From the IMG/VR virus record IMGVR_UViG_3300026521_000003, positions 186,001 through 250,000 of that record: 64,000 nt of DNA. The stretch is one strand, 5' to 3'. The notes beneath the pieces are model-generated. The model had not been told where the DNA came from, searched no databases, and saw only the letters and a list, made by a program, of their open reading frames with translations. This document shows, piece after piece, positions 10,327 to 63,849 of this stretch. The position numbers were made by a program, and so were the translations under genes. Each line of letters begins with the position of its first letter. Position 1 is the first letter of the stretch.

Positions 10327-11640
10327 TTAAAATACACTAGGTAAAATATCATATTCATCAAGATCTAGATTATCATCATCTTCATCTTCAATTATCGAAG
10401 AGCCCATAGCAGCTTGTTTGGCATACATTTCTCTTTCTAATTTTTTAGCTTCTTCAATAATTTTTAATTCTTCGGCTTTTTTTTCTTCTTCTGACTTCTC
10501 TTTCTCTAAGGCTTCAGCTGCCATTCGTTTTCTATGTTGTTCAGCAGGATCTAACTCCTCTTTATCAATATTTACTATTTTCTCTTCTGGTTTAACCAAC
10601 ATCATATTATCAACTGAGAAATCTCCCTGAGCAAAATCGGCAAAAACATTCATAAGATAATAAACTATCTGAAATGCGCACATGACTCTATCATCATGGT
10701 ATCCACTTTTACCGGAATAAGTACCATTACCAGTTCTAATAAAACCATATAATTCGTCAATAAATTTCTCATCATTGATAATTAGTTTGTTATACTCTAA
10801 TAAATTTTTAAATTGTAGTGCCAATTTACTTTTCATAGTTGGATTTAAGTGTAATCCAGCTCCTTTACCATCATAAAAAATAGGTATTTCTAAATTTTCA
10901 ATTGCCTTTTCTGTCTGTGTTAGAATTTGAGCTAATCCCTCACCGATACCATTTCTTTCAAAAATCAATAATGATTCATCAGGCAAATAGTTCCACCTTT
11001 GTTGCATAAATTGTTGTAACCATAAAATCTTTTCAAATATTAGTGATGCATCCATATCTGGATCTACAATAGATCCAACTTGAAATACTTGTTTGGGGGC
11101 TATTTCCCATAAGTGTAAAACTGATGAATCTTCGCCTCCTGCACTAGGGTCAATAGTTATAATTAGAAGAGAGTCTACATGGTCTAGTTTATCTTTATAA
11201 ATCTCAAAGCCCATAATCTCTTCAATTACACCAGGAGTTTGATAAAAATCAAGAATATCAGTTTCAATTAGTGTTTTTTCAAAAGTGAGGAATTGACAAT
11301 TATGTGATTTAATTTTATTTGAAAGTAAAAAATTATTATCTGTACTTTCAACTTCGATAATATCTATCATCTGTGATTCGGAAAAGATTTCATTGATGTT
11401 GGAGATTTCTAGAATTGTATTTTCAGTTTTTAATTTCTGTCCAACCGCTAAATTATATCCTTTAATAAGTTCATTATCATCTGTCCAAAAAATATGATTT
11501 TTACTACATTTAATATTAATATCATTTTCAAATGTTATGCTTAAATATGATTTATGTTTTGATTCAGCAAGGCCTGCAAATGATTTATAGCCCTCGGTTG
11601 TTTTAATTAAGAATCGATTATTTTTTATTAAGTTGTCCAT
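10327..11640 (-). CDS. Terminase large subunit (gp17-like), C-terminal nuclease half, preceded by a split-intein C-fragment
   Basis: Residues 1-114 are intein (KSFAG, IKCSKNH, DIIEV, SHN). Extein begins CQFL and contains IDPSAGGEDSS, FERNGIG and GYHDDRVM (RNase H-like terminase nuclease). No ATPase half in the window. Confidence 0.85.
   Translation of the reverse strand: MDNLIKNNRFLIKTTEGYKSFAGLAESKHKSYLSITFENDINIKCSKNHIFWTDDNELIKGYNLAVGQKLKTENTILEISNINEIFSESQMIDIIEVESTDNNFLLSNKIKSHNCQFLTFEKTLIETDILDFYQTPGVIEEIMGFEIYKDKLDHVDSLLIITIDPSAGGEDSSVLHLWEIAPKQVFQVGSIVDPDMDASLIFEKILWLQQFMQQRWNYLPDESLLIFERNGIGEGLAQILTQTEKAIENLEIPIFYDGKGAGLHLNPTMKSKLALQFKNLLEYNKLIINDEKFIDELYGFIRTGNGTYSGKSGYHDDRVMCAFQIVYYLMNVFADFAQGDFSVDNMMLVKPEEKIVNIDKEELDPAEQHRKRMAAEALEKEKSEEEKKAEELKIIEEAKKLEREMYAKQAAMGSSIIEDEDDDNLDLDEYDILPSVF
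11299..11640 (-). mobile_element. Atypical split intein C-fragment (AceL/GOS-TerL type), 114 aa
   Basis: Has block B (CSKNH) and blocks F/G ending HN|C, but lacks block A (N-terminal Cys). Confidence 0.85.
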
Positions 11641-11679
11641 AAATCTATTTATTATAGAATATCTTAATTTTTAATAAAT

Positions 11680-11687
11680 TATTTATA
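11680..11687 (-). promoter_or_regulatory. T4-type late promoter for the TerL C-half
   Basis: TATAAATA on minus; a second AATAAATA at 11646-11653. Confidence 0.6.
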
Positions 11688-11696
11688 AAAGAGGAT

Positions 11697-11725
11697 TAAT
11701 TTAAAGGGTATATCCCTTTAAATTA
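11697..11725. terminator. Hairpin, probable terminator of 11723-12202
   Basis: TAATTTAAAGGG-TATAT-CCCTTTAAATTA, a 12-bp perfect stem. Confidence 0.6.
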
Positions 11726-12202
11726 TAAAAGTTTAGAAAGTAAAAATGTTTTATGGGTTCTGTTAGTGAATGATAGCATAACTTCATTTGATTTATTACT
11801 TTTATATAATGTAAATTCAGAATATACTTCAAATAATCTATTAATAGTATCAAAAATCTCTGCTATATTTACGTATAATTTTTCTTCATAACAATATTTT
11901 TGAAATTCTGTAAACATACTTCTATCAAAAGTTTTAAGTTTATCAAAGTTTGATAAAGATATAGCATCTCCAGGATTCGTATCAAGTGATTGTTCAACAG
12001 GTATCAGTTTATTTCTTGCTAGTTTAAATGTGCCTTCAAAATCAATTTCCTTTGCATTTGCATATACTATCATAGATTTATCATTAATTGATGTTAAATA
12101 ATTTCCATCAGACGATGTATATAAAATATTTTTATTTTTTTGTAAGGTTTTAAATCCTCTTAAAACGTCTTTATTAACCGTTTCTATTATTTCATCTGTC
12201 AT
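11723..12202 (-). CDS. Hypothetical protein
   Basis: AAGGA SD; no intein-N or ATPase motifs. Confidence 0.65.
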   Translation of the reverse strand: MTDEIIETVNKDVLRGFKTLQKNKNILYTSSDGNYLTSINDKSMIVYANAKEIDFEGTFKLARNKLIPVEQSLDTNPGDAISLSNFDKLKTFDRSMFTEFQKYCYEEKLYVNIAEIFDTINRLFEVYSEFTLYKSNKSNEVMLSFTNRTHKTFLLSKLL

Positions 12203-13295: not shown

Positions 13296-15950
13296 CTATG
13301 CTCCTATAATAGATACTGCAATATCTTTAACTGTATTGATCACACCATCATTTACAGTTAATGTAATAGTATCTGAACCAATAGTATCGGTCGCAGTATA
13401 TGTTATGATTTTATTAGTTTCATCAAATGTAACAGTACCTACTCCTGCAGTAATATTGTATGCTAGTGTATCTCCATCTATATCATTAATAGTTACATTA
13501 ATATCTGTTGTTGAATTAACTACAACTTCTATACTATCAACAGTATCAATAATTGGTGCATCATTAACAGCTAATACTGTTATTGTTAATGTTTCTGAAA
13601 CACTTCCACCTTCAAAGTCACTCGCTGTTATCACAACTGTATCGGTACCATTGAAATCATTATTCGGTGTATATATAATAGTGCTATTATCTTGATCCCA
13701 TTCAACCGAACCATTATCTGCAATACCAGTAACTTCAAACTCTCTATCATCTGTTGCTGTAATCGCAATAGTGATTGGAGTATCTTCATTCGTTTCATAT
13801 GTTAGAGGATCTATTACTAGCGTTGGAATTTGATCATTTACTGGTGTAACAGTAACATTGATAGTTTTAATTGTTTGTCCACCATCAACATCATCAACTA
13901 TAATAGTAATTGTATCTTCACCGCTAAAATCCGTATTAGGTGTATAATCTATAACTGGTGCATCTGAGTTAGAAACATTATATAATGCCGTACCATTTAA
14001 TGCTGAAATAGTGATATTACTAATGTCACTATCAATATCAGATATAGAAATAGGTATTGCAATCGAATTATCTTCTATAACGGTAGCATTATCAACTACT
14101 ACAATAGGATTATCATTTACTGGTGTAATTGTAATATCGATTGAAGTAGAATCAGTAAGACCATCAGCATCTGTTATGGTAATAGTTAAAGTATCAATTC
14201 CATTAAAGTCTGCGTTTGGTGTATAGATTAGATTAGTACCATCCCAAACTGATGTACCATTATTTGATACTCCCTCAACGGTAAATGTGCTATCAATATC
14301 ATTAAATGTAAATGGTATAGTTGTCGGTGTATCTTCATCTATTGTAATATTTGTTGCTCCAGTAATCGTAGGAGCATCATTAATTGGATTGACATTAACA
14401 TTTATAACTTTTGTAGATTCTGCTCCAAGACTATCAGTTGCTGTAATAGTAATTGTATCACTTCCATTAAAATTTGTATTTGGAGTATAACTTAATTTAT
14501 TTAAATTACTGTCAAAGGATACAGTACCATTTAAAGCACTAACTACAACAGAGGATACAGTTTCATCAGCATCAACAACTGTCATATCAACAGAAATTGT
14601 ATTATCTTCATCAACAAATAATGTGTCACTAACTGTTATAACAGGACCAACGTTTGTACCTGCTACAGTTATTGTTTGTTCTGCTGTTGCTAAGTTTCCA
14701 GCAATATCTCTAACTTCCACTTTAACTATATAATCAACACCATCTTCAAGAGCCGATATATCATCAATAGTTAAACTCCAAGTATTTGCATTTACTGTGG
14801 TAGAATATTCCTGACCATTTAAAGTAACTAATACAGGTTGATTATCTTCAATATCAATAGTTGTTCCAGAAATAACTAATGGTTCTAATTTTTCTGTATG
14901 GGTGATAAATCCATCTGAAATAGGATATATATTTACAACGCCCGGACTATTATCTGGTTCATAAGTTACAACTGGTAACGCTTCAATTTCAATATTTGAT
15001 GCATCTCTCATAGCAATTGTAAAATCTTTGAAAATATTAGGAGCTCCTTGATTTCCACTTAGAACTTCAAAATAACTGATAACATTATCATCTTCCCAAA
15101 CACCTACAGAATCAGTAAAAATAAATGATTCTTCATTAGATAATTTAGTGTAAAATTTCCCAGAGACAGCTCTTACTCTTATACTAGTAAGACCTTCTTT
15201 CATAATGAATTGAATTTTAATATATCTTGTAGAAATATCTGATAAATCAGTAATAAGTCTATCTCGTCCATATATATTTTTTTCTATAAATACAGGCTTA
15301 TTTATTATATTATAATTTATTCCATCATCAGAATATGAAATTAAGGCATAATCAATTGCATTATAATTATTAGAATCACTTTGATTTAATGTTAAAATAT
15401 ATTTTTCCAAGGATATATTTTCTTGAAGGTCGTATTTTAATATTGTTTCATTCCCTACAGCAGTTTCCAGACTAGATAAAATCATAACTGATTCATGCGG
15501 TTCATTATCGGTAATTGTGGTGATTGAAGGATATACAATATATCCTTCATAAGTAAAAATTGGAATATCTGTTGGGTATAATTCCGACTCTCTATTGTGT
15601 AGTTGAACAGCTACCCAACCAATAGTTCCATCTATTGCAAAATTAAAATCTAAAGCATCTGGCGCATGTCTTAAAATTTTTTCTTTTTTAAGTTTATCAT
15701 AGTCTGCATAAAACATTCTATTATCAAATCTAGCAATAATATTATCGCCGAAAGCACTTTCAAAAGCATGTTTATCCATAATTTCATATATTACGTCTGT
15801 TGATGGTATTGGGCCATTCATAACGTAAACTGTTGAATTCGGATAATATCTTCTAAAAGCATATATAGCTGGTGATAGAGTATTATATTTATTTTCTACT
15901 TCGGTATTAAAATCCCAAGCTATACCTAAATAATTTTTTAAAATCATCAT
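13296..15950 (-). CDS. Virion protein, module A paralogue 3, with discoidin-like insert and Ig/cadherin-like repeats
   Basis: PDALD..IDGTIGW and FTDSVGVW...FKDF...RD shared with 16792-17376 and 18174-18704. Repeated NDAP..(D/E)ED..YTPN.(D/N)FNG.DTITI units. Confidence 0.75.
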   Translation of the reverse strand: MMILKNYLGIAWDFNTEVENKYNTLSPAIYAFRRYYPNSTVYVMNGPIPSTDVIYEIMDKHAFESAFGDNIIARFDNRMFYADYDKLKKEKILRHAPDALDFNFAIDGTIGWVAVQLHNRESELYPTDIPIFTYEGYIVYPSITTITDNEPHESVMILSSLETAVGNETILKYDLQENISLEKYILTLNQSDSNNYNAIDYALISYSDDGINYNIINKPVFIEKNIYGRDRLITDLSDISTRYIKIQFIMKEGLTSIRVRAVSGKFYTKLSNEESFIFTDSVGVWEDDNVISYFEVLSGNQGAPNIFKDFTIAMRDASNIEIEALPVVTYEPDNSPGVVNIYPISDGFITHTEKLEPLVISGTTIDIEDNQPVLVTLNGQEYSTTVNANTWSLTIDDISALEDGVDYIVKVEVRDIAGNLATAEQTITVAGTNVGPVITVSDTLFVDEDNTISVDMTVVDADETVSSVVVSALNGTVSFDSNLNKLSYTPNTNFNGSDTITITATDSLGAESTKVINVNVNPINDAPTITGATNITIDEDTPTTIPFTFNDIDSTFTVEGVSNNGTSVWDGTNLIYTPNADFNGIDTLTITITDADGLTDSTSIDITITPVNDNPIVVVDNATVIEDNSIAIPISISDIDSDISNITISALNGTALYNVSNSDAPVIDYTPNTDFSGEDTITIIVDDVDGGQTIKTINVTVTPVNDQIPTLVIDPLTYETNEDTPITIAITATDDREFEVTGIADNGSVEWDQDNSTIIYTPNNDFNGTDTVVITASDFEGGSVSETLTITVLAVNDAPIIDTVDSIEVVVNSTTDINVTINDIDGDTLAYNITAGVGTVTFDETNKIITYTATDTIGSDTITLTVNDGVINTVKDIAVSIIGA

Positions 15951-24000: not shown

Positions 24001-25549
24001 TATCAGTATATACTGCTGTAGATGATAGATTTCCAGCTAAATTATCAATAGAATCATCTGGAAGAATTGCTATCCAATCTAGTAAAACTTTATCTGATTT
24101 CAAAACATTAAATGATATATCAACATAACTAGTTTCATCAATAGCTCTAACATTAACGGTACCTATTTCGGTAGGATAAAAGTATATATAACCCTCAGAT
24201 GTTGATACATCGCCATTATAAGGATTTATATCATATTTAATTTCGGACCTAACAAAATTTCCAGAAGGAGCCATTCCAATTATTGATAATGTTCCTTTTG
24301 CATTTGAAAATCGTATTTTTGCAGGTATATCTAATTGTATTACTTCTGGAGTTTCTACTATTAATTCTAAATCTTTATTAAATTTAACATGTGATATTAC
24401 CAATCTTGGTGATCTATCTATAACATTATCAACTATTTCTAATGGTTCTATATTAGATACTGCACTAGGTGTTATATATAACTCAGCTGAAAAGTTTGAT
24501 CTATCATATTCAAAACGACTTGTAAATGAAGGTAAATTATTAGTTGCATTTATAGTTAAATCTCCAATAACATTCCCTAGAGATATTTTAAATTCGGCTC
24601 CAACGTTTCCGAAAACATAATCTTTATTTTTAACGTATAAATCTTCCGGAGTTATATAAATATTACAAAATGTTACTTTTGTTGTTCCTGCAACGTTCGA
24701 TGATAAATCTAAACGATACCCCTCAATTAGTGGAGCTTTTACTTTGATCCATAATAAATTACCTTCAATATAGTAATCAAACCATTCAGTATTTAATGGT
24801 GAATCACATAAAATTTCCTCAGTAGTACCACTAATAAGAAACGGTTCATACTTAGTTGAAAGTTCATTTAATTTTATGTCGTATCCACCAGTTATAGACC
24901 TAATAGTACCAGCAAGTTGTCTGTTAAATTCATCATATGGATATAAATCATTAGCTAGTGATGATGGTAAAATACCAAGTCGCTCTCCATCAATAATCAT
25001 TACCTTTTTATAAATACTAACGACACTATTATCTGCTGCAGTAATTGTAAACTGTACATCGGTTATTGAATAATCTGATAACATATTTAAAGAAACTATA
25101 CCGCTGTTTATACTATGTGTAAAGTTTTCTGACGTATTGGTATATGATAAGGAAATGTCAAAGGGACTAGAAACCTTATCATCAGCTGTTAAATATCGAT
25201 TATAAAGATGAGACCACCTCTGCTCAACAATTTTTATATCTTGGGTATTATTAGTACTATTATAATATAGAATAATATCATCTATATCACTAAGTATTTT
25301 TCCATATACTTCTATACTGTATGAATAGTCTATAGCATCAACTTCAACTGGAATATCTAAAACTTCTCCAAGTAGTGTTTCTATATGTATTAAAGTAAAA
25401 CCTAATTGATTAGTTGTTTTAACTGTCAGTTCATCACCCGAAAGAAAATAATCTACTAAATCTTCATTATCAGCCCATATTGTATTAATAGCTACTTCAC
25501 CACCATTGGGTGAAACGATTTTAACTGTGTATGTATTATTAACAACCAT
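21041..25549 (-). CDS. Large tail fibre/baseplate-associated protein with a fibrinogen-like motif and ~26-aa repeats
   Basis: 1502 aa, beta-rich; SCYDIK...SGEFRIFP...VICEF...WT; repetitive acidic C-terminal half. Confidence 0.6.
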   Translation of the reverse strand: MVVNNTYTVKIVSPNGGEVAINTIWADNEDLVDYFLSGDELTVKTTNQLGFTLIHIETLLGEVLDIPVEVDAIDYSYSIEVYGKILSDIDDIILYYNSTNNTQDIKIVEQRWSHLYNRYLTADDKVSSPFDISLSYTNTSENFTHSINSGIVSLNMLSDYSITDVQFTITAADNSVVSIYKKVMIIDGERLGILPSSLANDLYPYDEFNRQLAGTIRSITGGYDIKLNELSTKYEPFLISGTTEEILCDSPLNTEWFDYYIEGNLLWIKVKAPLIEGYRLDLSSNVAGTTKVTFCNIYITPEDLYVKNKDYVFGNVGAEFKISLGNVIGDLTINATNNLPSFTSRFEYDRSNFSAELYITPSAVSNIEPLEIVDNVIDRSPRLVISHVKFNKDLELIVETPEVIQLDIPAKIRFSNAKGTLSIIGMAPSGNFVRSEIKYDINPYNGDVSTSEGYIYFYPTEIGTVNVRAIDETSYVDISFNVLKSDKVLLDWIAILPDDSIDNLAGNLSSTAVYTDTKLKAGDLVGNLWVEGAKYGHNRIRRIKYKVSPPDEIVGDSNAGLDWLLTLKNTTSTLRIDIRDGFILNNIGKVYDVTSYWVEDNIFETEIISDLTIDFSNAQTPLITDLNHRIAVTDIYDNSGVIIYNEGDGTETVTAKVSLEPIVYFDYIVVEEQPKIPVEKPMSCYDIKRLDPYAESGEFRIFPSVLDDTSINVICEFNKDQNGNDEIWTTIPNTSIRNLADSIGRYISDDNTILDGVINNGIRPKYYPSDDTSSESPSYLFLEFPYKIKSFSYKLRVDQPSTNSMATFKIMTDTSTVFNINGSIDNYIMNTRANTFIEYNEDIIKSDLGQIVIVPDDYTQYATTANAPLGAITPIIPTDRIVIFNTGAVTGFDAAEIFLEEIKFQSIFDPAMITTEPWEEKTSSIDIPNDFVKLSTIHKSIISNSINDIINLNEYISTNIEIPYNISKDTEEIIDINEYINLDSKFIAIISLDNIGVIELSEFINTSSDEINIISDTEDNILNINEFVSLAVEERPYMVSNTDLEVMEIALEMPNIEFERTNFIYNISLVEDNPLTIDNNYKLNIVSHENIISNIYSEIIEPISNYSLKSNIADIISTDDVLDIIDLNEFVTLYTNTTNIITQNSTNIIDLGEAINNDGNNTLNNISYIDAEVIELDTLLLFMDAYHPTVIAQVEVQIIEIDEFVNINSGRELDFTVYQDGTKALDYIDEVTVDFTSLTDIYFDTDIIEQKNRDEIVEINFTSVETIYFDTDIIEQKNRDEIVEIDFTSVETIYFDTDIIEQKNRDEIVEIDFEASAEFIGGLVVFETKENEELRIQLQKDIKIPIVHGNFKINTGRNISGSNIPSQNNLKIPRIEVNESYSYGTNKNGTNVRSQENKNISIIGQDINILSTRTRVSTTKEIKVADLNELVRVGLPTIYYPDTTIKISGTSITADEPTIESTYIELNSEASTTLELSIEKDSELEINIYEDSTEIIESVTIN
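21611..21850. repeat. Three tandem copies of a 78-bp (26-aa) unit
   Basis: Units start at 21611, 21689 and 21767, with a partial at 21845; protein unit DFTSVETIYFDTDIIEQKNRDEIVEI. Confidence 0.9.
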
Positions 25550-28500
25550 TATATTGTCTCCTCATTTAATTCAATTTCAAAAAATACTTCTGATGTATCA
25601 ATTTCTAAATAAAATAGATTTTCAGCTAAACTTTTACTATTAAACCACAATGATGCATCTATTGACTGTACAGTAAATGAATTACTAACATTGCCTGTGG
25701 AAATAATATCATTAAAATTGATTACTGTTGATCCAGGAATATCTGAAAGTAATCGGAATTCTATACTATTATTATTTACTATGCGTACTTCAACAAGTGT
25801 TGAATCATAATTATCAATTATTTCAAGAGTACCCTGTACATTTAAAATATCGACCGTATGCCAGTCTATATCAGTATTTATCAACTTATAAAGTTTATAT
25901 GACGGTAATAATAATTCATTATAATTGCAATTTATATTGATTTTTAATGATTTATGATAATCGGATATAAAAATATTTGTTGTACCTATATGATTAAAAG
26001 TTAATTCTAATTCTTGAGTTTCTTTATTAATATTAAAATCTGCTATACTATCATCATCACTCCATACCAATAAGTTGTCCCAATCATTATTATATGGGTG
26101 TAATAGTTGTATTGTTGCCTGACTTCCAATTATAACTGGAAAAAGAGTATGAGTTCTAGAAGAGTTATTGTATGGTAAATTTATATCTATATATTGTACA
26201 ACTTCAACATTAATATTTATTTCAGATTCAGAATCTGAAAAATTTATTATAGATGATCCTATATCTGTATATTGAGTATCAGTAACAAATGTAAACATTT
26301 TAGGTCTAGGCCCACCATTACGACAATCAAAATACTTATCTTCACCATTATATATACTTGCATATTTCAATCCTAAAATATTTGGATTTTCGATATTTAT
26401 ATTTAGTCCTTCTGCCTGATACTCAATTTTTAAATCTCGATAAGCAGTATTTGTGCCTTCATTATAGATAAATTCTGTTTTGGAATTCATAAATCGATAT
26501 TTGTCTATTATAAAGTTTTGTGCTTCTTGACCATTAACTGTTAGGTATTTATTAACAGTATAATATGCAGTAACTATATGTACCATAGATGGTTCAATTA
26601 ACCCATCTCTAACATTTATTTCATTGAAGTATGGATCTATGATATACATCATTCGTTCATTTAATTGTTGCTGGTATGGATTTATAACTAATTTATTTTG
26701 TGTGCAATATGTATTTATTCCTGGTTGATAACAAGGGCCTGTTGATATATCCAAAATAGCTCTATTAGAATGGCTTCTTCCATACTGTTGTAAATATGAT
26801 CTAAAACCACCAGCAGTAAGAGAAGTAGGTACAATATTATCAATATTAAATAAATCAATTTGTACTTCACCATCATCCACTATTAATTCACCTAGATTTA
26901 TCTCTTTCTCTCTATTTTCTAAACCCTTTATTCTCATATGTTTAGTGATGTATAATTTATATAAGATTTCACTTGATCCATTTACTATTTTAAATTCCTC
27001 TAAATACCATCCTTCAGTAATTTCATCAGCTGATATATTTGGCTTGATTTTTATTAATCCATTTTTATTCTCACCAGGCTCAATAGTTACAACCACTTTA
27101 TCTGAAGCTCCAATAATTGAAATTGTGTCAGCATAATAATAATTTAGAAGAGCTCCTGGTTCATCATACTCAAATGCTTTAATTACTGTATTATTATCTT
27201 TTTCAAATAAAGGGTTTGTAAAAGGAGCATTAATACTAATTGGTTCTAAAACTGAAAGAGTTGGCTCTTTAATATCTAAACTAAATGAATATGTATTTAT
27301 CCCATCAGATAAAGTTATTTCTGCTACACCTGATGTCATACCTTCTGGTAAATTTATAGTATCAAAAATTATTTTAATATTTTCTCTTTGTTCAAACTCC
27401 CCTGGAATAGGTTTACCATCAATATCTAAAACTGGAACTTCAATAATTTCTCGTTCAATTTTATAGGATAACGCACCTAATGAATCAACGATTTCTAAGT
27501 TATTTAAATCTAAGTTCATTTCTGTAATAATTATTTCTGGTTGATATGTATTATCACTATCATATACTGGAGGCAGTTTAACACAATTTTCAACATTTAC
27601 AATTATCTGTTCTCCTGTTGATGGGTTTTCAAGTAGAACTTCACAAGGATTGCCTAGTGTATCTAAATTCTCTACTAATGTCCAACCATCTGATATTAAA
27701 CCGTCTATATATGCCTGTTGTAACTCTGATGGTGATTGGGCAGGAAAAACTAAATTTTTATATTCTGCTGCAGTTATAGTGATTTTTTCACCTGTTGCAG
27801 GATTTAAAACTGTAATCATAGGGTTTGAAGAATCTATAATTTCATCTAAATTAGATAATAATGATTCTTGAGTATCGGTATTTTCCGGTAAGAAAACTGG
27901 ATCTGGATCAGTAGTACAAATAATATTTCGATCTCTTAAATAATCTTCAACATTTTGCTCAATTTTATTTAAATTTATATCATAATCAATTACTTTAGTT
28001 AAAGGGTTACGCTCTTTAGCTTCACATAAAGTTTCTATACATTGCGTGTATTCAGAACCGGAGAATTGACTACACCCATCAATTTGACATATATAATTAT
28101 TATTAACTAAAAATGAAGAAATTGTTTCTTCTTTATATTCATTGTTTAAATCTTTTGTTAATATAATTGATCTTGGATCTTTATCACATAATGATGATAG
28201 GTATTCTAAATAATCTGGATCATTAGGGTCTTTATATTCAATCAAATCAGGAAACTCACAATAAATTGAAGTTAATTGACCGGTATATGGATTCATAACT
28301 AAATGAATTCCATCTTCAGTTAAGCCATTTAAAAATAATTCCATACATGGATCATCGGGTCTAATATTTTGAGTTGCTTTAAATGGTCTAGCAGGTCGCA
28401 TACCATCAATTTCCATACTAAATGCTTTGTAGAAAACTAAAGTCTCAACTTTTGTTTGAACATCATCTTTGTTTTTAACAGCAAAAATAGATATTGAATA

Positions 28501-39494: not shown

Positions 39495-39605
39495 ATGATT
39501 CTGGATGAGATTGTAAACATTGAAAAGATCGGTATTGAAAAAACTATTGATATTGAAGTGGATGGAGACCACCTATTTTATTGTAATGGTATTTTAACTC
39601 ATAAT
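39495..39605 (+). mobile_element. Split intein C-fragment, gp41-1-like (37 aa)
   Basis: MILDEIVNIEKIGIEKTIDIEVDGDHLFYCNGILTHN|S. Confidence 0.9.
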
Positions 39606-40100
39606 TCAGCAGCAGGTGATGTTGCTGATGTCTCAGAAGAAAATATCCAAGGGGGTATTTCTAAAATTCAAGCAGCCGATAATGTTATTGGTTTTATACC
39701 AAATGCACAATCAAGAGAAATGGGTATAATGCGAGCTAAATTCTTAAAAACAAGAGATAGTAGTGGTGTTGGTAGTACTGTTGATTTTAAAGTCGATTGG
39801 AGTACCTTAACATTTGAACCTTGGGATACAACTGGAGAGAATAATCCATCAGTTTTGAATTATGCAGCACAAGCGCAAAATGCAGCACAATCATTAAATG
39901 CAGATCAACCCTTGCAAAAAACTACAAAAGGTAAGAAAAAACCATCTGCTAGTGATTTAAAAGGTAATTCGGGTGCAGTAGTAAAATCGGATGATGAAGA
40001 TGATGATTCTAGCACATCGGGTAAAAAAACCAAAGGTATTATTAAGGGACTTGGTGGTAAAAAGAAAAAAGGACTTAACAGAGAAGTTAAGATGTTATAA
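39495..40100 (+). CDS. gp41-type replicative helicase C-terminal fragment preceded by a split-intein C-fragment
   Basis: 37-aa IntC ending THN, then S+1 and the helicase tail IQGGISKIQAADNVI...FLKTR.S.GVG. Own TATAAT (39469-39474) and AGGAG SD. Confidence 0.85.
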   Translation: MILDEIVNIEKIGIEKTIDIEVDGDHLFYCNGILTHNSAAGDVADVSEENIQGGISKIQAADNVIGFIPNAQSREMGIMRAKFLKTRDSSGVGSTVDFKVDWSTLTFEPWDTTGENNPSVLNYAAQAQNAAQSLNADQPLQKTTKGKKKPSASDLKGNSGAVVKSDDEDDDSSTSGKKTKGIIKGLGGKKKKGLNREVKML

Positions 40101-50710: not shown

Positions 50711-50767
50711 ATTATTTCCTTTTTTTCTTTTATTTATTCTTAAACTTTCTTTTGATATAATAAATCT

Positions 50768-51085
50768 ATGAAAAGAAAATGTGATATTTGTAATACTGAT
50801 TATTATGTTAAAAAATCTGATTTAGCTAGAGGATGGGGATTAACATGTAGTAAATCTTGTGCAGCTAAAAAAAGAGAAAGATCTAGGAATAACTATGATG
50901 AAACAACAGTTAAAATCAATAACCTTAAAAGAAAATTATGGTTTAACAAATATAGAAGTATTGAATTAGAACTCAGAAAGAAAAATAAAAATATGACCGA
51001 TATTGAAATTTGGGTTGAAATGTATAAGATTACAAATGATGAGATATTTTTATTTGATGAAATAAAAGATATTTTCATTTTTTAA
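50768..51085 (+). CDS. Zn-finger protein with C-terminal DIFIF tag
   Basis: CDIC...RGWG..CSKSC; ends MYKITNDEIFLFDEIKDIFIF*. Confidence 0.7.
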   Translation: MKRKCDICNTDYYVKKSDLARGWGLTCSKSCAAKKRERSRNNYDETTVKINNLKRKLWFNKYRSIELELRKKNKNMTDIEIWVEMYKITNDEIFLFDEIKDIFIF

Positions 51086-51094
51086 AGGATATTG

Positions 51095-51673
51095 ATGCAT
51101 ATAATATTAACAGATCATGTAAAAAATAGAAGAAAGAAAGGTAAGATCCCACCGCAAAGATTAATAGACTTTGCAACATATCTTATAAAAGAACACGATT
51201 TAAAAAATAAAGAAGATGGCCGATATAAGTTCCGTAGGAAATCAACATCAGCGATTATTTCTAAGAAAAAAGAAAAATTCACATTTATCACCTTTTTTGG
51301 TGGTACAGGATGGTTGATTGATTCTGATGATTTTTCCGGATTTAATTGCAAAAAACAAACGGCTGAACGAGTTAAACTTTCCATAAAAAGAAGTAAAGAG
51401 AAGAATAAAAATAAAATTATAAAAGAGATTAAACCATTACAAAACCTTAATGCTGAAATAAAAGATAAACTGAAAAGAGACACTTTCAAAATTGATAAGT
51501 TGCGGGGCACTACAAAAGTAATTCTTAAAGCTATGTTTGGTAATAATCCTGAATTTTTATTTTTATCTAAATTCAAATCATACAATTTAGTTTCAATTTT
51601 AAGAAGAGATGGTGGAATTATAAAAACGATTCACAAAAATAAACTTATAGAAATAGGAGTACTAGATGGATAG
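51095..51673 (+). CDS. Basic hypothetical protein
   Basis: AAGGA SD; Lys-rich. Confidence 0.65.
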   Translation: MHIILTDHVKNRRKKGKIPPQRLIDFATYLIKEHDLKNKEDGRYKFRRKSTSAIISKKKEKFTFITFFGGTGWLIDSDDFSGFNCKKQTAERVKLSIKRSKEKNKNKIIKEIKPLQNLNAEIKDKLKRDTFKIDKLRGTTKVILKAMFGNNPEFLFLSKFKSYNLVSILRRDGGIIKTIHKNKLIEIGVLDG

Positions 51674-52175
51674 TAATGGTTTTATAAAGATGATAGGTAA
51701 AATGCAAAATATGTGGCAACCTACATATATAGATGAAGAATATGTCAAGGTTTATAAAGATATTTGGTTTGTTGATTCTAGTTATCCTTTTGAAATAACC
51801 AGAGATTATGAAATGGTTTTAAAAAATGAAGATGAAATTTTATCTCAAATTGGTTTATTACCAAATGCTCAAAAAATGGTACAAATGATGATGAATTCAA
51901 CGTACGGTAGTTACGGAGTACCATCGTCAAGATTATATGGAAACCCTTCTCATTATTATGCTCGAACGATGTCTACCAATAATTTTTTTAAAGAGTACAA
52001 ATATGAAGAAGCAGCTAAAGTAGCACAAAATGAAAAATTGATTGCTCACTATAATCATAAAATTAAAAAAGCACCAAAGAAGAAAGAACAAGTTGAACGT
52101 CTTACAAAAATTATTGAAATGCTCGAACAAGAAAACGAAGATTTTATCACAGAATATCCAGAAAGGTTTATTTAA
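51666..52175 (+). CDS. PE-tag protein carrying a PolB motif-B-like peptide
   Basis: Contains QKMVQMMMNSTYGSYG; ends TEYPERFI*. Confidence 0.7.
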   Translation: MDSNGFIKMIGKMQNMWQPTYIDEEYVKVYKDIWFVDSSYPFEITRDYEMVLKNEDEILSQIGLLPNAQKMVQMMMNSTYGSYGVPSSRLYGNPSHYYARTMSTNNFFKEYKYEEAAKVAQNEKLIAHYNHKIKKAPKKKEQVERLTKIIEMLEQENEDFITEYPERFI

Positions 52176-52642
52176 TGAATACATCAACAAATCATGTACA
52201 TACGATTAATACGATACCACTTTATCAAGCCCAACATCATCTAACACAAAAACACCAAAGTACTGGAAGAATCAAGCGTTCTTTTAATCTTGGTTCCTCT
52301 TTCCAAACCGGATATAAATATCGGGTATTAACACGATTTCCATTTAGTGTTTCTAGACATGAGGAACTTGATGAAGTAACAGTTTTTGATTTTTTTGACC
52401 GTATTACTTATCATCTTTGTGAAACGAGATTGGAAGCTGAAAAAATAAGATTGGAAGCTTTAGAAGAACATTATGATGAACAATATAAAAAATATTTAGC
52501 AGATACTTCTAAATTTAAGCGCAAATCGTATAAATTTAATGGGTATGTTTCAGTTGATGGTTTAAAGGCCAAAAGGTTACTTAATAGATACAAAACTGAA
52601 TTGAATAATTTGGAAAAGGATCATCCAGAATGGCTAATTTGA
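52175..52642 (+). CDS. PE-tag protein (paralogue of 53355-53813)
   Basis: FPF, RLEAEK.R; ends KDHPEWLI*. Confidence 0.7.
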   Translation: MNTSTNHVHTINTIPLYQAQHHLTQKHQSTGRIKRSFNLGSSFQTGYKYRVLTRFPFSVSRHEELDEVTVFDFFDRITYHLCETRLEAEKIRLEALEEHYDEQYKKYLADTSKFKRKSYKFNGYVSVDGLKAKRLLNRYKTELNNLEKDHPEWLI

Positions 52643-52980
52643 ATCATATCTTATTGCCGGAACACCGAGGTAGAACATGGCTTAATAAATGGTGGAAAAC
52701 TACTTCTTCCATTAATGAAGAAGCGTTCGATATTATACTTGAGCGAGTTAATATTTTAATAGAACGTTTTGAAATTCCTGTACAAAATCCATCAATGCTA
52801 ACCTCTATAATGGATCGAATAATTAGGAACTACAATGCTATTGTTTATGAAGAAAATGGAGAAATTATGATAGTTGATTTATTTAATTATCAAACGGAGG
52901 ATACCTATGCTTTTGGCCTTGGTAACACACCAATATTCAATAAGTATATTTTCGATAATTACCCAGAGTTATTAGTATGA
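52630..52980 (+). CDS. Hypothetical protein, C-terminal PE-tag family
   Basis: Ends DNYPELLV*. Confidence 0.7.
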   Translation: MANLNHILLPEHRGRTWLNKWWKTTSSINEEAFDIILERVNILIERFEIPVQNPSMLTSIMDRIIRNYNAIVYEENGEIMIVDLFNYQTEDTYAFGLGNTPIFNKYIFDNYPELLV

Positions 52981-53342
52981 TTGATGTAGAAGATATAAAA
53001 CCAGGTACAGTTATTGAAATTCCATTAAACTTTAAATCGCATAATTTTAGTAATTTAGTTCCTGGTTCACTAGTACTTATTTACTATGTGAATAAATTTT
53101 TGTGTTCTGGGATTGATATGAAACGTTCAAAGATGATGGGAATGGATATATCATGGGATGATTTAAAGCAGGGAGTAATTGTAGATTTTATCCCTGAACC
53201 AGAACCACTTTTTTATCATTGGGTTGGAGAAGGAAGAACTACTTCGAGTACTGATGCAGTAGAAATTATTTTAAAAAAACAAGAATATCGAAAAAAATTA
53301 GGTTTATTAATAGCCGAATTTTATCCAGAATATACTTTATAA
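52977..53342 (+). CDS. Hypothetical protein, C-terminal PE-tag family
   Basis: Ends EFYPEYTL*. Confidence 0.7.
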   Translation: MIDVEDIKPGTVIEIPLNFKSHNFSNLVPGSLVLIYYVNKFLCSGIDMKRSKMMGMDISWDDLKQGVIVDFIPEPEPLFYHWVGEGRTTSSTDAVEIILKKQEYRKKLGLLIAEFYPEYTL

Positions 53343-53354
53343 TAAGGTTTAAAT

Positions 53355-53813
53355 ATGAGTTTAAATTCACTTAATTCTAAAATCGTATCTAGTCTAGGAG
53401 TCCCACTTTCAAAGATTAGACCTTTGAATACAACAATCACATCAGCACCACCTACGGCATCATCGATGGTGATGGGAGTAGATGTAGCATCTATGTATCC
53501 AAGTAGTACTAGTTCTTATAATTCTGGTGGAAATTTAAATTTTGGCTCTTTAATAGATGTACCATATTTAGTTTCTAAAGATTTTCCATTTAAAATAAAA
53601 GTTATTTCAAAATCGGATATTAAAACTATTCAAAATAGTTTTAGTGATATGATTGATCTTATGAGTAAGTATGATGGATATGGCTCAAGATTAGAAGCTG
53701 AGAAACAGCGTATTAAAAAACTTATAGATGCCACCGTAGATATTAGTATAGTAAAAGAATTAGAAAAATCATTAGAAAACATTGAAGTAGATCATCCAGA
53801 GTGGCTAATTTAA
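53355..53813 (+). CDS. PE-tag protein carrying a PolB motif-A-like peptide
   Basis: Contains MVMGVDVASMYPS; FPF, RLEAEKQR; ends VDHPEWLI*. Confidence 0.7.
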   Translation: MSLNSLNSKIVSSLGVPLSKIRPLNTTITSAPPTASSMVMGVDVASMYPSSTSSYNSGGNLNFGSLIDVPYLVSKDFPFKIKVISKSDIKTIQNSFSDMIDLMSKYDGYGSRLEAEKQRIKKLIDATVDISIVKELEKSLENIEVDHPEWLI

Positions 53814-53836
53814 ATTAATTCATAAGTGATTTAAAG

Positions 53837-53844
53837 TATAAATA
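53837..53844 (+). promoter_or_regulatory. T4-type late promoter heading the DIFIF-tag array
   Basis: Exact TATAAATA 38 nt upstream of 53882. Confidence 0.6.
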
Positions 53845-53881
53845 AGTTAAAATTCACTATTATAGTGTATTAGGAATTTTA

Positions 53882-54703
53882 ATGATTGATTTAGATTATA
53901 TTTTTGATGATGTTAAAAATAAGACAATAACAAAAAAAGAAGCGTATGAGTTAGTAAAAAATATTGGTGATAGTATGACATTTACTACGTCTAAACATAC
54001 TAGTACTGATGTGTATGTTGAAATAGCAAAAAAAATCCCTGATGATGATTTGATTGAGACTATGATAAATTCTCAAATAGAAAATTATCGTAGTAGTCAA
54101 GGGATATATAGATTGTTAGATTTAGCTTCAAAAACTTTTTTTGAAAAAAAGTGGGATGAAGCTATCAATCAACCCGGTGGTTATTATTTAAACTATTATA
54201 AGTCAAAGCATACTGATGGAGAAAAACTGTATTATTTATGGACTCATATTTTAAAGAAAAAACCGGCAGCAAAGAATTGGAAAGAAAAACTTAAACAGGG
54301 TATTTTAAGTCATCCTAATTGTCCACCAAAGATTACAAATAGACAATTAAGGAATTTAGATAATATACATATTATAGCTTTAAATAAAAATTTAGCATCT
54401 AATCCAAAGGCTCTAAAAGCTGTAGGTGATTATGCAGCAGTATTTAGACATGATGGTATATTTGAAAATCTTACAAGAAACAAATATGTTCCTTGGGAGA
54501 AAATTTCAGAAGTTGTTGATATGAAAAATCAAGTAAAAGCCATGATGACACCTTCTGTACCTGTAACGTTTAGAAGAAAAGCTGCAATATTAGAATTTTT
54601 TAGAAGAGAAGATACTCCTGATAAAGCGAGAGAGGTAATGTATAAAATTACTGGTGATGATGAATTTTTACCTAAAGAGGTACGAGACCTCTTTATTTTT
54701 TAA
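53882..54703 (+). CDS. Helical-repeat protein, DIFIF-tag family
   Basis: LRV-like HPNCP; ends MYKITGDDEFLPKEVRDLFIF*. Confidence 0.75.
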   Translation: MIDLDYIFDDVKNKTITKKEAYELVKNIGDSMTFTTSKHTSTDVYVEIAKKIPDDDLIETMINSQIENYRSSQGIYRLLDLASKTFFEKKWDEAINQPGGYYLNYYKSKHTDGEKLYYLWTHILKKKPAAKNWKEKLKQGILSHPNCPPKITNRQLRNLDNIHIIALNKNLASNPKALKAVGDYAAVFRHDGIFENLTRNKYVPWEKISEVVDMKNQVKAMMTPSVPVTFRRKAAILEFFRREDTPDKAREVMYKITGDDEFLPKEVRDLFIF

Positions 54704-54712
54704 GGATATATT

Positions 54713-56254
54713 ATGAGAAAAAATGCAATTCAAACTAAAGAAAATATACGAGAATGGGTAAAGAATCATTTAGATTCATTCCCTTTTAAAATGAGTATTG
54801 AAGAATATGATAATTTAACGGATGGATTAAAATCATTAATTGAAAATAAATTGATTTCTATTCATAATAAGCAATACCCTAATAAAACAAAAGATTCATG
54901 GAGACATGACTATAAATTTACTAAAACAGAATTAAATAAACTTAAAATTCCAGACCCGTTTTTACCTCCAAGTAGTTTAAAACGTATTGAAAGTGGGTTG
55001 ATTAAAGCTAGACAAATAGCTGAAGATAATAAACCTATTAAGTGGGTTGATATTAATGAACGTTTAAAAAAGAATTTTAAAAAATGGGTAGATGAATACG
55101 CTGAAACATTTGATGAAGACTTTCTTGGAAGATATTTTGATGATTTACCTGAAGATATAAAATTAGAATGGATTACACTAATGGGTAAAAAGTTTGGTTT
55201 AAAAACTCCAGGAGCATTAAAAAAAGGTTTTATTTCAGCAAAAGATATGATTGACCAAGTCCAACATATGAGAATTCCTAATAATATTCATAATGCTATA
55301 TTAGATGTATTGCCGGAATCAGCATTTTTACAAACTACTAATAAATCTGATATGAAAAACTGGGATGCAAAAGAACAAGTTGCTTTTACGAAATCATTAT
55401 CTCAAGAAGAATTAAAAGCAGCACGAGAAAATAGAAAAATTGATAAAAAGCGAGTAAAACTACTAGCTAAAGCTAGAACTATTAAAAGTTTAGAATCTTA
55501 TCAAGAACTTCTTTCAGATCCTCTATTTGATAGAGATATGCTTGAAACGATTATTAAACGTATGGAGCGAAAAACAGCTTTTGATAATGGTTGGGGAGAT
55601 CAAAATAAAAAAGAAATTCTGAAATTGATTGTTACTCATCCTTTCTTATCATATGAAGATTTAAAAAGAATAGAAAAAGTAAAAGCCCCAAATTATTATG
55701 CAGGTTCACAAAAAGAGTATGTTTCAAAAGAATTAAATACTGCTCTAGCATCTAAAAAAGATTTACCTGAAAGTGATCTAATGAAGATGGTAAAAAAGCA
55801 GCAATTCGATATTAAAGTAATTGCATCTAAAAGAGATTTAAAAGAAGAAAATAGAGAAATCTTGATTACATATACTATAAAGCATCACTCACATATGCCA
55901 GCTCAATTAGAAGAAGTATTTTCTAATTTAAAGATTAAAAAAGATAAGTATAAAAAGGAAATTATAGAAGCATTATATTCAAAATATATAGAGAAAAATT
56001 GGTTAGCTAACGGAATCCGATTCTTAGAGGTTGTAGATAAATATAATTGGCTGTCTGAAATTGATGAAGAATTAAAATCAAAAATAGCAAGATCATTAGT
56101 TAAGAACTATAAAGATAATAGGATTAGTCAAGATAGATTAATAAAAATGCTAAACAAAATATCTGCAGGTGCGGATTATTTAATGAAACTATATGAAGAA
56201 ACTGGCGATGACGCTTTCTTACCAACTGATGTTAAAGACATTTTTATATTTTAG
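54713..56254 (+). CDS. Helical protein, DIFIF-tag family
   Basis: Ends LYEETGDDAFLPTDVKDIFIF*. Confidence 0.75.
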   Translation: MRKNAIQTKENIREWVKNHLDSFPFKMSIEEYDNLTDGLKSLIENKLISIHNKQYPNKTKDSWRHDYKFTKTELNKLKIPDPFLPPSSLKRIESGLIKARQIAEDNKPIKWVDINERLKKNFKKWVDEYAETFDEDFLGRYFDDLPEDIKLEWITLMGKKFGLKTPGALKKGFISAKDMIDQVQHMRIPNNIHNAILDVLPESAFLQTTNKSDMKNWDAKEQVAFTKSLSQEELKAARENRKIDKKRVKLLAKARTIKSLESYQELLSDPLFDRDMLETIIKRMERKTAFDNGWGDQNKKEILKLIVTHPFLSYEDLKRIEKVKAPNYYAGSQKEYVSKELNTALASKKDLPESDLMKMVKKQQFDIKVIASKRDLKEENREILITYTIKHHSHMPAQLEEVFSNLKIKKDKYKKEIIEALYSKYIEKNWLANGIRFLEVVDKYNWLSEIDEELKSKIARSLVKNYKDNRISQDRLIKMLNKISAGADYLMKLYEETGDDAFLPTDVKDIFIF

Positions 56255-56262
56255 GTGATATT

Positions 56263-56736
56263 GTGGAAAATGATTACAAAATTTTATTAAATGATATTAA
56301 ACAAAGTGCTAAGGGTAAAATGGTTTTTAATTCAAAAGAGATTGTGAGTCAAGAAATGTTAAGTCCTCAATTAGCAAGAATAGCTATTGATTTAGTTACA
56401 TCAAGAAGAGGAAATGAAATCTATGAACTTGCTCCAGCTGTAGCCGTAGAGATCAATGACCCAATGGTTAAAGATCATATTTTAGATGAAATTCTTAAAA
56501 ACTATTTAAATAGGCAATCGGCACCAACAGCAATTATTGAATTTCTTATTAAAAATGCTAATAAATTAGACATTGGTCTAATGGAAAAAATTTATGATAC
56601 ATCGGATGAAGATTTTAAACTTTTTTTAAGAAATATAGGACAAAAGTTTAGAGAAGATTTTAATATAAAAGTATATAATGAAACTGGCGACAAATCATAT
56701 TTGCCAGAAGAAGTAGCAAGTATATTTATTTTTTAA
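56263..56736 (+). CDS. DIFIF-tag family protein
   Basis: Ends VYNETGDKSYLPEEVASIFIF*. Confidence 0.75.
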   Translation: MENDYKILLNDIKQSAKGKMVFNSKEIVSQEMLSPQLARIAIDLVTSRRGNEIYELAPAVAVEINDPMVKDHILDEILKNYLNRQSAPTAIIEFLIKNANKLDIGLMEKIYDTSDEDFKLFLRNIGQKFREDFNIKVYNETGDKSYLPEEVASIFIF

Positions 56737-56746
56737 AGGATAAAAA

Positions 56747-57631
56747 ATGTTTGAAATAGATGAAATGGTATATAAATTAAGAAGTATTATTGATTATGAT
56801 ACAGCGATAAAATATTATAACGATGAAATAAAAATAAAGTTAAATCATGACTTTCAATATGCAGAATTATTACGCAAATATTTAGATAAAACAACAGCTT
56901 TAAAATATTGGCAAATTGGATTTGATATAGTATCTGATATAGATTCTGAATCACTTTGGTCTGATTTTGTATATCTATTAAATTCTAAATTAGCTTCTAA
57001 AAATAAAAATATCCCTTGGTTAGCATCAATGGTAAGTAATCTATCAAAAAAAATTAAAGTTGGGCATAATCTTGAAACATTAATTATGTTATTTATTAAT
57101 GTTAATTTGTTCCGATTTTATATAAAAGAAGTTCATCCAAAGTTAGACCAAGATGATTCCTATTGGGCAATATCTTCAGCAAGTAAAAATATGAATTTAA
57201 ATAATATCGATGAATTAGTTGAAATAGCAGATTATAAGCTTTTTGAACGTATTTTAAACAATGATAAGGTAATGCCTGAAAATAAATTAAGATTATTAGA
57301 GTTGTTTTTAAGAAAAACTCAATTTGGTGTTAAAAATTTTAGTAGTCTGGATTTTTTATTTTTGCTTGAAAATCATCGTCGATGGTTTAATAATGTAAAT
57401 GTTATGAATTCAACAACAGCAGCATATAGAAATTTATTACCTGATGAAAGTGTTGCAAAATTATTAACTGAAATTATAATGGATGGAGATTTTACAGATG
57501 AATCTAAATACTTATGGCTATCAAGTATGTATCAATATAAATTAAATGATACAATGGGAGTAGCATTGTATGGATTAACTCAAGATGTTAAATATCTAAC
57601 AGATGAAATTAAAGATATATTTGTATTTTAA
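56747..57631 (+). CDS. DIFIF-tag family protein
   Basis: Ends LYGLTQDVKYLTDEIKDIFVF*. Confidence 0.75.
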   Translation: MFEIDEMVYKLRSIIDYDTAIKYYNDEIKIKLNHDFQYAELLRKYLDKTTALKYWQIGFDIVSDIDSESLWSDFVYLLNSKLASKNKNIPWLASMVSNLSKKIKVGHNLETLIMLFINVNLFRFYIKEVHPKLDQDDSYWAISSASKNMNLNNIDELVEIADYKLFERILNNDKVMPENKLRLLELFLRKTQFGVKNFSSLDFLFLLENHRRWFNNVNVMNSTTAAYRNLLPDESVAKLLTEIIMDGDFTDESKYLWLSSMYQYKLNDTMGVALYGLTQDVKYLTDEIKDIFVF

Positions 57632-57642
57632 GGATGTAAATT

Positions 57643-58158: not shown

Positions 58159-58172
58159 TAAGAGGCTTAAAA

Positions 58173-58988: not shown

Positions 58989-58998
58989 AGGATAAAAA

Positions 58999-59637: not shown

Positions 59638-59685
59638 GAGAAATTAAGGATATATTTAATATAATTAAAAATAAGAGGAATTAAA

Positions 59686-60393: not shown

Positions 60394-60403
60394 AGGGGGT
60401 TTA

Positions 60404-61075: not shown

Positions 61076-61084
61076 AGGTACATT

Positions 61085-62593: not shown

Positions 62594-62603
62594 TGAGGAT
62601 TAA

Positions 62604-62996: not shown

Positions 62997-62999
62997 AAA

Positions 63000-63840: not shown

Positions 63841-63849
63841 GAATTAATT

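Follow-up and report, generated by a model that had tools for sequence, protein, structure and literature searches.

In a T4-like jumbo phage three separate genes encode the large terminase (TerL), and two independent protein trans-splicing reactions most likely join their products into the complete enzyme. The window, that is the whole stretch of 64,000 nucleotides (nt) analysed here, corresponds to bases 186001-250000 of the linear IMG/VR virus record IMGVR_UViG_3300026521_000003 (289,880 bp; hereafter G000), which is 87% complete according to CheckV. Because a Gp23-type major capsid protein is encoded in G000 (expectation value (E) 5e-80), we assign it to the T4-like jumbo phages. The window contains terL-C, the gene for the last terminase piece, which starts with the C-part (IntC) of a split intein; the genes for the first and the middle piece, terL-N and terL-M, are located outside the window in the same record and end with an intein N-part (IntN). 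Gene anatomy, its conservation in relatives, colinearity of the three pieces with T4 gp17 and modelled docking of intein halves are the observations on which this reading is built.

terL-C carries the C-part of an atypically split intein

terL-C is an open reading frame (ORF) of 437 amino acids (aa) on the minus strand of the window (10327..11640). Its first 114 residues (11299..11640, minus strand) constitute IntC2, which belongs to a class-1 intein with an atypical split and ends in ...KIKSHN; the C-extein (residues 115-437) begins with CQFLTFEKT. Blocks B, F and G are present in IntC2 and the block A with Cys/Ser-1 is absent, the start of terL-C lying approximately at the beginning of the strand that comes after block A. 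A phmmer search against PDB sequences gave the C fragment of the Cat intein (CatC, 6dsl_B) as best match for residues 9-116 (E 1.4e-6), followed by the gp41-1 intein (E 2.5e-4). In an alignment of 27 terL-C homologues His49 (block B), Asp93 (block F), His113 and Asn114 (block G) and Cys115 are invariant, and Ser46 is nearly so. Cys115 (codon 11296..11298, minus strand) is the first residue of the C-extein (+1) and the predicted nucleophile of the trans-esterification.

The RNase H-like TerL nuclease domain follows at approximately residues 158-345 (10606..11169, minus strand) and was assigned by sequence and fold. Residues 221-337 match the nuclease of RB49 gp17 (3c6a, E 5.9e-4; phmmer against PDB sequences) and residues 157-339 match PHROG terminase families, whereas no significant family was returned for terL-C by Pfam, so that the PHROGs, PDB sequence and fold searches were needed instead. 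Asp164 of the motif TIDPS and the motif DD316-317 fall into invariant columns of the homologue alignment. An AlphaFold2 model of terL-C with the 27 homologues as input reached a mean predicted local distance difference test (pLDDT) value of 78.6. In a fold search it matched T4 gp17 (E 2e-13), the RB49 nuclease with a template modelling (TM) score of 0.82 by target and the Cat intein with a TM score of 0.76 by target. The HINT fold of its N-terminal part was recovered with the inteins 6dsl (Cat), 6qaz (gp41-1) and 6vgv (VidaL) and with RadA, DnaB and DnaE inteins (E 1e-6 to 1e-4), and the Avs3-terminase complex 8dgc was also among the fold matches. The gene is real and probably functional.

An earlier note on this DNA, made from the sequence alone, had described a 114-aa intein fragment with blocks B, F and G and without block A, joined by HN-CQFL to a terminase nuclease domain (here and below a hyphen within a motif marks the junction), and had counted it among the atypically split inteins of the AceL-TerL and GOS-TerL kind. 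The CatC match, the alignment of homologues and the fold agree with this description. The TATAAATA and the hairpin that it had placed upstream of the gene were located at 11680-11687 and 11697-11725, in a context that resembles a late promoter. It had also recognised neither a TerL ATPase part nor a partner IntN in the 64 kb, and the sole Terminase_6N match of the record indeed lies outside the window.

Two further genes complete the terminase

This match, the only one in the full 289,880-bp record, is located at 275.4 kb and belongs to terL-N (G000:C1:275194-275802, plus strand), a gene for 202 aa at a distance of 78 kb from terL-C. The extein of terL-N (residues 1-169) carries the Walker A motif SRQMSKTT and ends in ...RGKSLKIVY. 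It is followed by a 33-aa block-A-like tail (CVDGETKITV..., with Cys170 as first residue) and a stop codon; this tail is referred to as IntN1. The alignment of terL-N with T4 gp17 (E 1e-16; 130-254 in the numbering of 3ezk) ends one residue before the Asp-Glu of Walker B.

The middle piece, terL-M (G000:C1:279385-280170, plus strand; 261 aa), was found by a six-frame pattern scan and lies 82 kb from terL-C on the opposite strand. By homology its start is perhaps the second ATG, at 279397. IntC1 comprises the first 112 aa of terL-M (108 from the second ATG) and ends in GLISHN. The extein of 108 aa begins with CDEMAFIPN, the Walker B motif aligned to IDECAFIPN of gp17 (254-299), continues with the coupling motif MIVTSTPNG and ends in ...KFKVEFE, after which a tail of 41 aa (IntN2, CLDEETKVDV...) runs to the stop codon. 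Since the gp17 alignments of terL-N and terL-M end and start at Walker B, the two exteins abut exactly. The top PDB match of IntC1 is likewise CatC (6dsl_B), with the same E of 1.4e-6 as for IntC2; IntC1 and IntC2 share an identity of only 26%. The N fragment of Cat (CatN) was not recovered by PDB sequence searches with the short IntN tails.

The exteins of 169, 108 and 323 aa sum to 600 aa, and T4 gp17 has approximately 610 aa. Local alignments of the concatenated exteins run through both junctions. Junction 1 is crossed by an alignment to the relative P0138, in which the N and M exteins are fused without intein 1 and IntN2 stands at the end; this alignment is gapless with 95% identity over 278 aa. 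The concatenated exteins also run through junction 1 against gp17A of phage PX29. Junction 2 is crossed without a gap by alignments to P0152 and P0153, where IntC1 is followed by fused M and C exteins, and Cys115 aligns with the C/G position of their motif ...EY(G/S)(G/C)EF.... The pieces cover gp17 exactly once, without overlap or frame disruption, and all motifs of a T4-type TerL (Walker A, Walker B, coupling motif, nuclease) are present over the three pieces in the order found in gp17; no single piece passes as a complete terminase on its own. The insertion site of IntC2 is the hinge before the nuclease, ...QE(Y/H)-C(E/Q)F..., and is distinct from site 1 at Walker B. As the exteins are colinear through both junctions, terL-C is neither an orphan nor one of two halves; it provides the third and final piece, and the IntN that pairs with it is carried by the middle one. 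Neither an intact terL nor a second terL signal was found in the 289,880-bp record.

Predicted pairing of the intein halves

For site 2 the complex of IntC2 (terL-C residues 1-130) and the tail of terL-M (residues 210-261) was modelled in three runs, together with three controls. The interaction prediction score from aligned errors (ipSAE) was 0.73 in all three runs, as opposed to 0.01 for the best control. In the calibration of the predictor this mark is reached by 58 out of 80 complexes of solved structure and by 2 out of 110 mismatched pairs, figures that are approximate here because custom alignments were used. In the modelled interface residues 219-234 of terL-M, i.e. Cys1 and its flanks, contact residues 5-13, 43-50 (block B), 89-94 (block F) and 112-115 (block G) of IntC2.

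Across the families the two sites differ in charge. At site 1 the mean charge is +1.17 for IntN residues 7-22 (n=47) and -1.84 for the first strand of IntC (n=50), and the corresponding values at site 2 are -2.96 (n=54) and +2.84 (n=82). Such opposite patterns would be expected if mis-pairing that deletes Walker B were selected against.

Conservation and variant architectures

Scans of IMG/VR with single proteins gave only 2 and 1 loci, and alignment-based scans were needed. The terL-C family comprises 90 clusters of 393-439 aa (nearly all 420-440) with the same architecture and 43-95% identity, the terL-M family approximately 60 clusters of 250-275 aa, and the family of N-type pieces 84 clusters. 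Mean identity to the G000 versions is 70-73% for exteins and 41-52% for inteins. Among 28 terL-M homologues His49, Asp92, Asn112 and Cys113 at IntC1 as well as Cys221 of IntN2 are invariant. For the N-extein of terL-N, 96% identity at the protein level stands against 79% at the DNA level. A library-wide search with IntC2 only returned 151 representative clusters at E ≤0.001, and the IntC2-like domain is positioned at the very N-terminus in 102 of the 150 clusters listed.

Several relatives differ in the number of pieces. In P0149 site 2 is occupied by a contiguous mini-intein. P0143, P0155 and 39 clusters of the N family contain an extra IntC (IntC0) inside the P-loop (...SHN-TT...), the counterpart of which is a piece A of 113-120 aa, found in 29 N-family clusters and ending in SRQMSK-C plus approximately 33 aa. 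By this cluster count (29 with piece A, 39 with IntC0 and 7 of the G000 type) the four-piece state is commoner in the clade than the three-piece state. An example is the 306-kb relative G001, in which three inteins are distributed over four dispersed pieces of 113, 250, 262 and ~441 aa at 185, 169, 230 and 201 kb, respectively; a GIY-YIG gene and a Vsr-like endonuclease gene adjoin two of the four. In a maximum-likelihood tree of 92 IntC domains the sequences group by insertion site (support 100/92 for site 0 and 97/98 for site 2). Thus, there are three old site-specific intein lineages with a common unusual split point.

DNA near-identical to the window is present in hydrothermal-vent and epibiont metagenomes (X1-X4). 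At the terL-C locus a contig of X1, which may be the source of the window, spans the whole stretch, and contigs of the epibiont sample X3 tile the locus with ≤3 differences, the start codon not being formally bridged. The layout of the locus is the same in both samples.

Intein 1 is part of a 4-kb cassette

Directly downstream of IntN1 an ORF for a homing endonuclease of 711 aa was identified (G000:C1:275838-277973, plus strand; phrog_3339, E 8e-139). It combines DUF7487 with a Vsr-like nuclease and is unusually long, with Mom-like and YunG-like C-terminal regions. Between this gene and IntC1 lies a lysine-rich ORF of 435 aa without a Pfam or PHROG match (G000:C1:278018-279325, plus strand). 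A contig of another metagenome, L024, lacks intein 1 and aligns to positions 274999-275704 and 279721-280124 of G000. The difference is a clean indel of 4,016 bp that consists of IntN1, the endonuclease gene, the 435-aa ORF and IntC1. In the distant relatives L106 and L112 the endonuclease gene is immediately upstream of IntC1. Because intein 1 travels with a homing endonuclease as a 4-kb cassette, we regard the splits as selfish elements that have become fixed and not as a designed regulator. No endonuclease was recognised among the screened neighbour genes of terL-C.

Upstream signals and expression of terL-C

A TATAAATA box (11680..11687, minus strand) is located 47 nt before the ATG of terL-C and is similar to the T4 late promoter. 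Further upstream a terminator-like hairpin (11697..11725, minus strand) with a 12-bp stem and a 5-nt loop, followed by ATCCTCTTTT, overlaps the stop codon of the preceding gene (159 aa). It is the sole terminator-like site in the 2.6 kb between 9800 and 12400, where 0.4 are expected. In the whole genome (27% G+C) TATAAATA shows no overall enrichment, with 127 occurrences observed and approximately 142 expected. In the 100 nt ahead of 314 crudely called genes, nevertheless, 46 copies are in sense and 17 in antisense orientation, mostly 24-50 nt from the ATG. Considering this bias of position and orientation, a T4-type late promoter at the TATAAATA of terL-C is a reasonable inference. Two metatranscriptome contigs of the preceding gene, X7 (11698-11874) and X8 (11712-11862), end at or near the base of the hairpin stem, which is suggestive of termination at this position, and a further metatranscriptome contig of 195 nt falls inside terL-C.

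Proposed assembly of the terminase and alternative explanations

According to our proposal terL-N would supply residues 1-169 with Walker A and IntN1, terL-M the 108 middle residues with Walker B and the TSTPNG coupling motif between IntC1 and IntN2, and terL-C the last 323 residues (hinge, RNase H-like nuclease and acidic tail) behind IntC2. Each short IntN, providing no more than block A with Cys1 and the first strands, would dock into a near-complete IntC and thereby close the HINT fold. Splicing would then proceed by the standard class-1 pathway through Cys1, the His of block B, the Asp of block F, the terminal His-Asn and Cys+1, and the predicted product is a TerL of 600 aa and ~69 kDa with the junction peptides IVYCDEMAFIPNR and VEFECQFLTFEK. 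Since a mis-join of N to C would be without Walker B, the pairs have to be kept apart, presumably by charge: pair 1 combines a basic IntN1 with an acidic first strand in IntC1, and pair 2 has the reverse, an acidic IntN2 with a basic first strand in IntC2.

The simplest competing scheme has two pieces only, an ATPase half with its IntN being joined to terL-C in a single trans-splicing reaction. terL-N looks like the half predicted by such a scheme, with its Walker A motif and its Cys-initiated tail of 33 aa. However, if it were joined to CQFL..., the ATPase would lose Walker B, motif III and ~108 residues, exactly the residues that a separate gene provides between IntC1 and IntN2, and the basic IntN1 would be repelled by the equally basic first strand of IntC2. 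We consider this scheme scarcely credible. The earlier note had expected trans-splicing between distant genes, and the partner indeed lies ~82 kb away, but there are three pieces and two inteins, and the partner is the tail of terL-M and not an ATPase half. In the same way the genome search that it had suggested, for an ATPase ORF with a Cys-initiated tail, leads to terL-N, which however stops before Walker B and carries the other insertion site. Its remark that no homing endonuclease is recognisable holds for the screened neighbours of terL-C; one exists beside intein 1, outside the window. The note had also named the findings by which terL-C would be a relic, namely no IntN-bearing N part in the genome or an intact terL elsewhere. 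Such pieces were found, and an intact terL was not detected in the record.

Decay of terL-C or of all pieces, with a working terminase encoded elsewhere, might be suspected from the weak Pfam terminase scores of the pieces and from a record that is only ~87% complete. Against this, the pieces tile gp17 once and in frame, the catalytic residues of ATPase, nuclease and inteins are conserved over dozens of clusters at 40-95% identity, and protein identity of the N-extein (96%) is far above DNA identity (79%). A phage with a Gp23-type capsid gene requires a T4-type terminase, and the 290 kb hold no second terL signal, all of which makes decay highly improbable. A different possibility is that the intein halves serve as docking domains only and that the terminase works as three chains without splicing. 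Split-intein halves bind tightly, and modelled docking is silent on chemistry. Docking alone, though, does not call for Cys1, a His in block B, an Asp in block F, the terminal Asn or Cys+1, and yet these residues are invariant or nearly so; the homologous inteins AceL-TerL, GOS-TerL and Cat splice in vitro (PMC11766414), and an unexcised HINT domain of 150 aa would sit within Walker B and within the ATPase-nuclease hinge. This non-covalent arrangement is therefore unlikely. The window derives from a metagenome assembly, and mis-joined contigs or a population chimera could in principle imitate split genes. The probability of such an artefact is negligible, as the start and end architectures recur, over many samples and assemblers, in ~90, 60 and 80 independent protein clusters, the terL-C layout is shared by X1, the possible source, and by the tiled contigs of X3 despite the start codon not formally bridged there, and start codon, stop codon and neighbouring genes are separate for every piece.

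Several points weigh against assembly from three pieces by splicing as proposed here. Splicing in the G000 phage is a proposal drawn from anatomy, conservation and modelling. The docking score indicates likeness and is not a proof of binding, because the Cat complex is already solved and the model may remember it; its calibration counts hold only roughly, as stated above. The two pairs are only putatively orthogonal, on the basis of the charge statistics. The block B Thr is replaced by Ser in IntC2 (Ser46), and some relatives have another residue in place of the penultimate His of IntC1; other inteins tolerate this. An exact TATAAATA was not found within 120 nt upstream of terL-N or terL-M, so that we can only infer a co-ordinated late expression of the three pieces. 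RNA libraries may carry contaminating DNA, which makes the RNA-contig evidence at the terL-C locus weak. Finally, a second intact terL could formally lie in the missing ~13% of the record.

Two wider ideas follow from the proposed three-piece assembly. Tentatively, and with some doubt, a whole clade of T4-like jumbo phages may build this essential enzyme from three or four pieces with the help of two or three related, mutually orthogonal split inteins that pair by swapped charges. It is also conceivable, as a speculation, that fragmentation postpones the moment at which folded TerL, the target of Avs-type sensors, appears.

Other split genes and further observations in G000

A split intein unrelated to those of TerL is encoded on the plus strand of the window (39495-40100), where a classical IntC of 37 aa (MILDEIVNIEK...GILTHN-SAAGDV) precedes the C-terminal part of a primase/helicase in one ORF. 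Matches were obtained to the gp41-1 intein (E 9.5e-6) and to phrog_239 (E 6e-9). The N half of this protein with its IntN was not found in the record: PF03796 gave nothing, and a weak phrog_239 match was rejected because it is a ClpA/B-like ATPase. G000 also encodes a ClpA/ClpB-like AAA+ chaperone of 774 aa (G000:C1:159808-162129, plus strand). A family-B DNA polymerase is likewise split, its two ORFs (G000:C1:4431-5249 and 25461-26630, both on the plus strand) being ~20 kb apart. One of them terminates, after ...SDTD-SVTKDATIE..., in an IntN of ~100 aa that apparently starts with Ser1, and an IntC of ~40 aa ending in ...ILVHN-SCYF stands at the start of the other. As TerL, primase/helicase and DNA polymerase are all split, three essential genes of G000 together carry at least four split inteins. 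A further Pfam intein match, at G000 252260-252532, looks spurious.

An ORF of 884 aa two genes upstream of terL-C (window 13296-15950, minus strand) consists of many tandem repeats of ~95 aa with motifs such as 'VNDAP...' and 'YTPN.DF.G.DT' in common. It has only a faint PHROG match and probably encodes a surface or structural protein. Furthermore, 40 ORFs of ≥100 aa share the C-terminal tail ~(F/Y)LPxE(V/I)K(D/S)IF(I/V/L)F, directly followed by the stop codon. Nearly all of them are arranged in one same-strand tandem array at 236.7-273.8 kb (window 50756-64000 onward, plus strand), and together the ORFs form an extensive family of paralogues that have a conserved signal at their end.

Comparison with known systems

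Natural split inteins have so far been described as joining two halves. The anatomy reported here requires two ligations, and three in relatives, without cross-joining. Evidently, several split inteins can accumulate in one essential gene, in the P-loop, in Walker B and in the hinge between ATPase and nuclease, and the pieces of the gene can be scattered over 80 kb and yet be kept by selection. For phage annotation this explains why terL seems to be missing or an 'orphan' in this jumbo-phage clade. To our knowledge no natural protein is known that needs two or three split inteins with its pieces tens of kilobases apart. Neither such a protein nor a multi-piece terminase was found in our literature search, the coverage of which was incomplete and is no proof of novelty. 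The paper on the jumbo phage MIJ3 was considered as a precedent and rejected, the split intein there being in PolB and not in the terminase.

Taken on its own, the intein of terL-C belongs to the already known atypically split TerL kind. As in class-1 inteins, Cys is found at intein position 1 (Cys170 in IntN1, Cys221 in IntN2), together with the residues of blocks B, F and G and the HINT fold, and both inteins are split after block A (IntN1 33 and IntC1 112 aa; IntN2 41 and IntC2 114 aa). Splicing-active members of this kind are AceL-TerL with 25 + 104 aa, GOS-TerL with 37 + 115 aa and the consensus Cat with 30 + 104 aa (PMC11766414). One GOS terminase intein is broken at an unusual point, with a C part of 122 residues that lacks motif N1 only, and the GOS locus has adjacent halves with a homing endonuclease gene between them (Dassa 2009, PMC2677866). 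Common to these systems and to G000 are the T4-type TerL as host protein, a short IntN with block A/N1 only (25-37 aa in GOS-TerL, AceL-TerL and Cat, 33 and 41 aa here) and a long IntC with the remaining blocks (104-122 aa in the known TerL inteins, 112 and 114 aa here). The Cys1/Cys+1 chemistry of AceL and Cat is predicted for G000 from the sequence as well. Nevertheless, the IntC parts of G000 are only ~26-33% identical to CatC. GOS-TerL, AceL-TerL and Cat are single split inteins that join two halves, whereas two inteins are found in one protein here, and unlike at the GOS locus the halves of site 2 are 82 kb apart on opposite strands. Cat exteins are reported to have Glu at position -2 (PMC11766414) and C-E at +1/+2. 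This context would fit site 2 better than site 1, and QQEH-C of PX29 fits it as well.

PX29 (GU396103), a cultured T4-like Aeromonas phage of the Straboviridae, has its gp17 split at the same hinge site. Its 17A ends in ...QQEH-C plus a 33-aa tail annotated as 'putative N-intein', and 17B contains a C-intein ending in THN-C, followed by the nuclease. In contrast to G000 there is one split only, 17A and 17B are adjacent in the canonical order 16-17-18, the annotation places a GIY-YIG endonuclease in frame ahead of the C-intein, and identity to terL-C is ~25%.

Site 1 resembles the fractured genes of Dassa 2009 (PMC2677866), as N-part plus IntN, a free-standing gene for a Vsr-like/DUF7487 endonuclease, and IntC plus the next part follow each other on one strand. 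It departs from them in the extra 435-aa ORF, which separates the endonuclease gene from IntC1. At site 2 this layout (PMC2677866) is absent, as the halves lie on opposite strands at a distance of 82 kb and an endonuclease gene was not recognised in the screened neighbourhood of terL-C.

A parallel to the whole arrangement is engineered tandem trans-splicing of three segments by two orthogonal intein pairs (PMC12707363, PMC7090010), in which the middle piece is flanked by the IntC of pair 1 and the IntN of pair 2, as terL-M is. Those systems (PMC12707363, PMC7090010) are laboratory designs, whereas in G000, and with four pieces in a relative, such an assembly would occur in nature, by means of two or three related short-IntN inteins. 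If the proposal is true, the phage terminase is the natural counterpart of engineered multi-segment ligation and offers protein engineering a ready orthogonal set of related inteins, which must already be orthogonal in vivo and appear to follow a simple charge rule. Their IntN of ~33-41 aa would be of particular use, since a short IntN is valued for the reason that it can be made synthetically.

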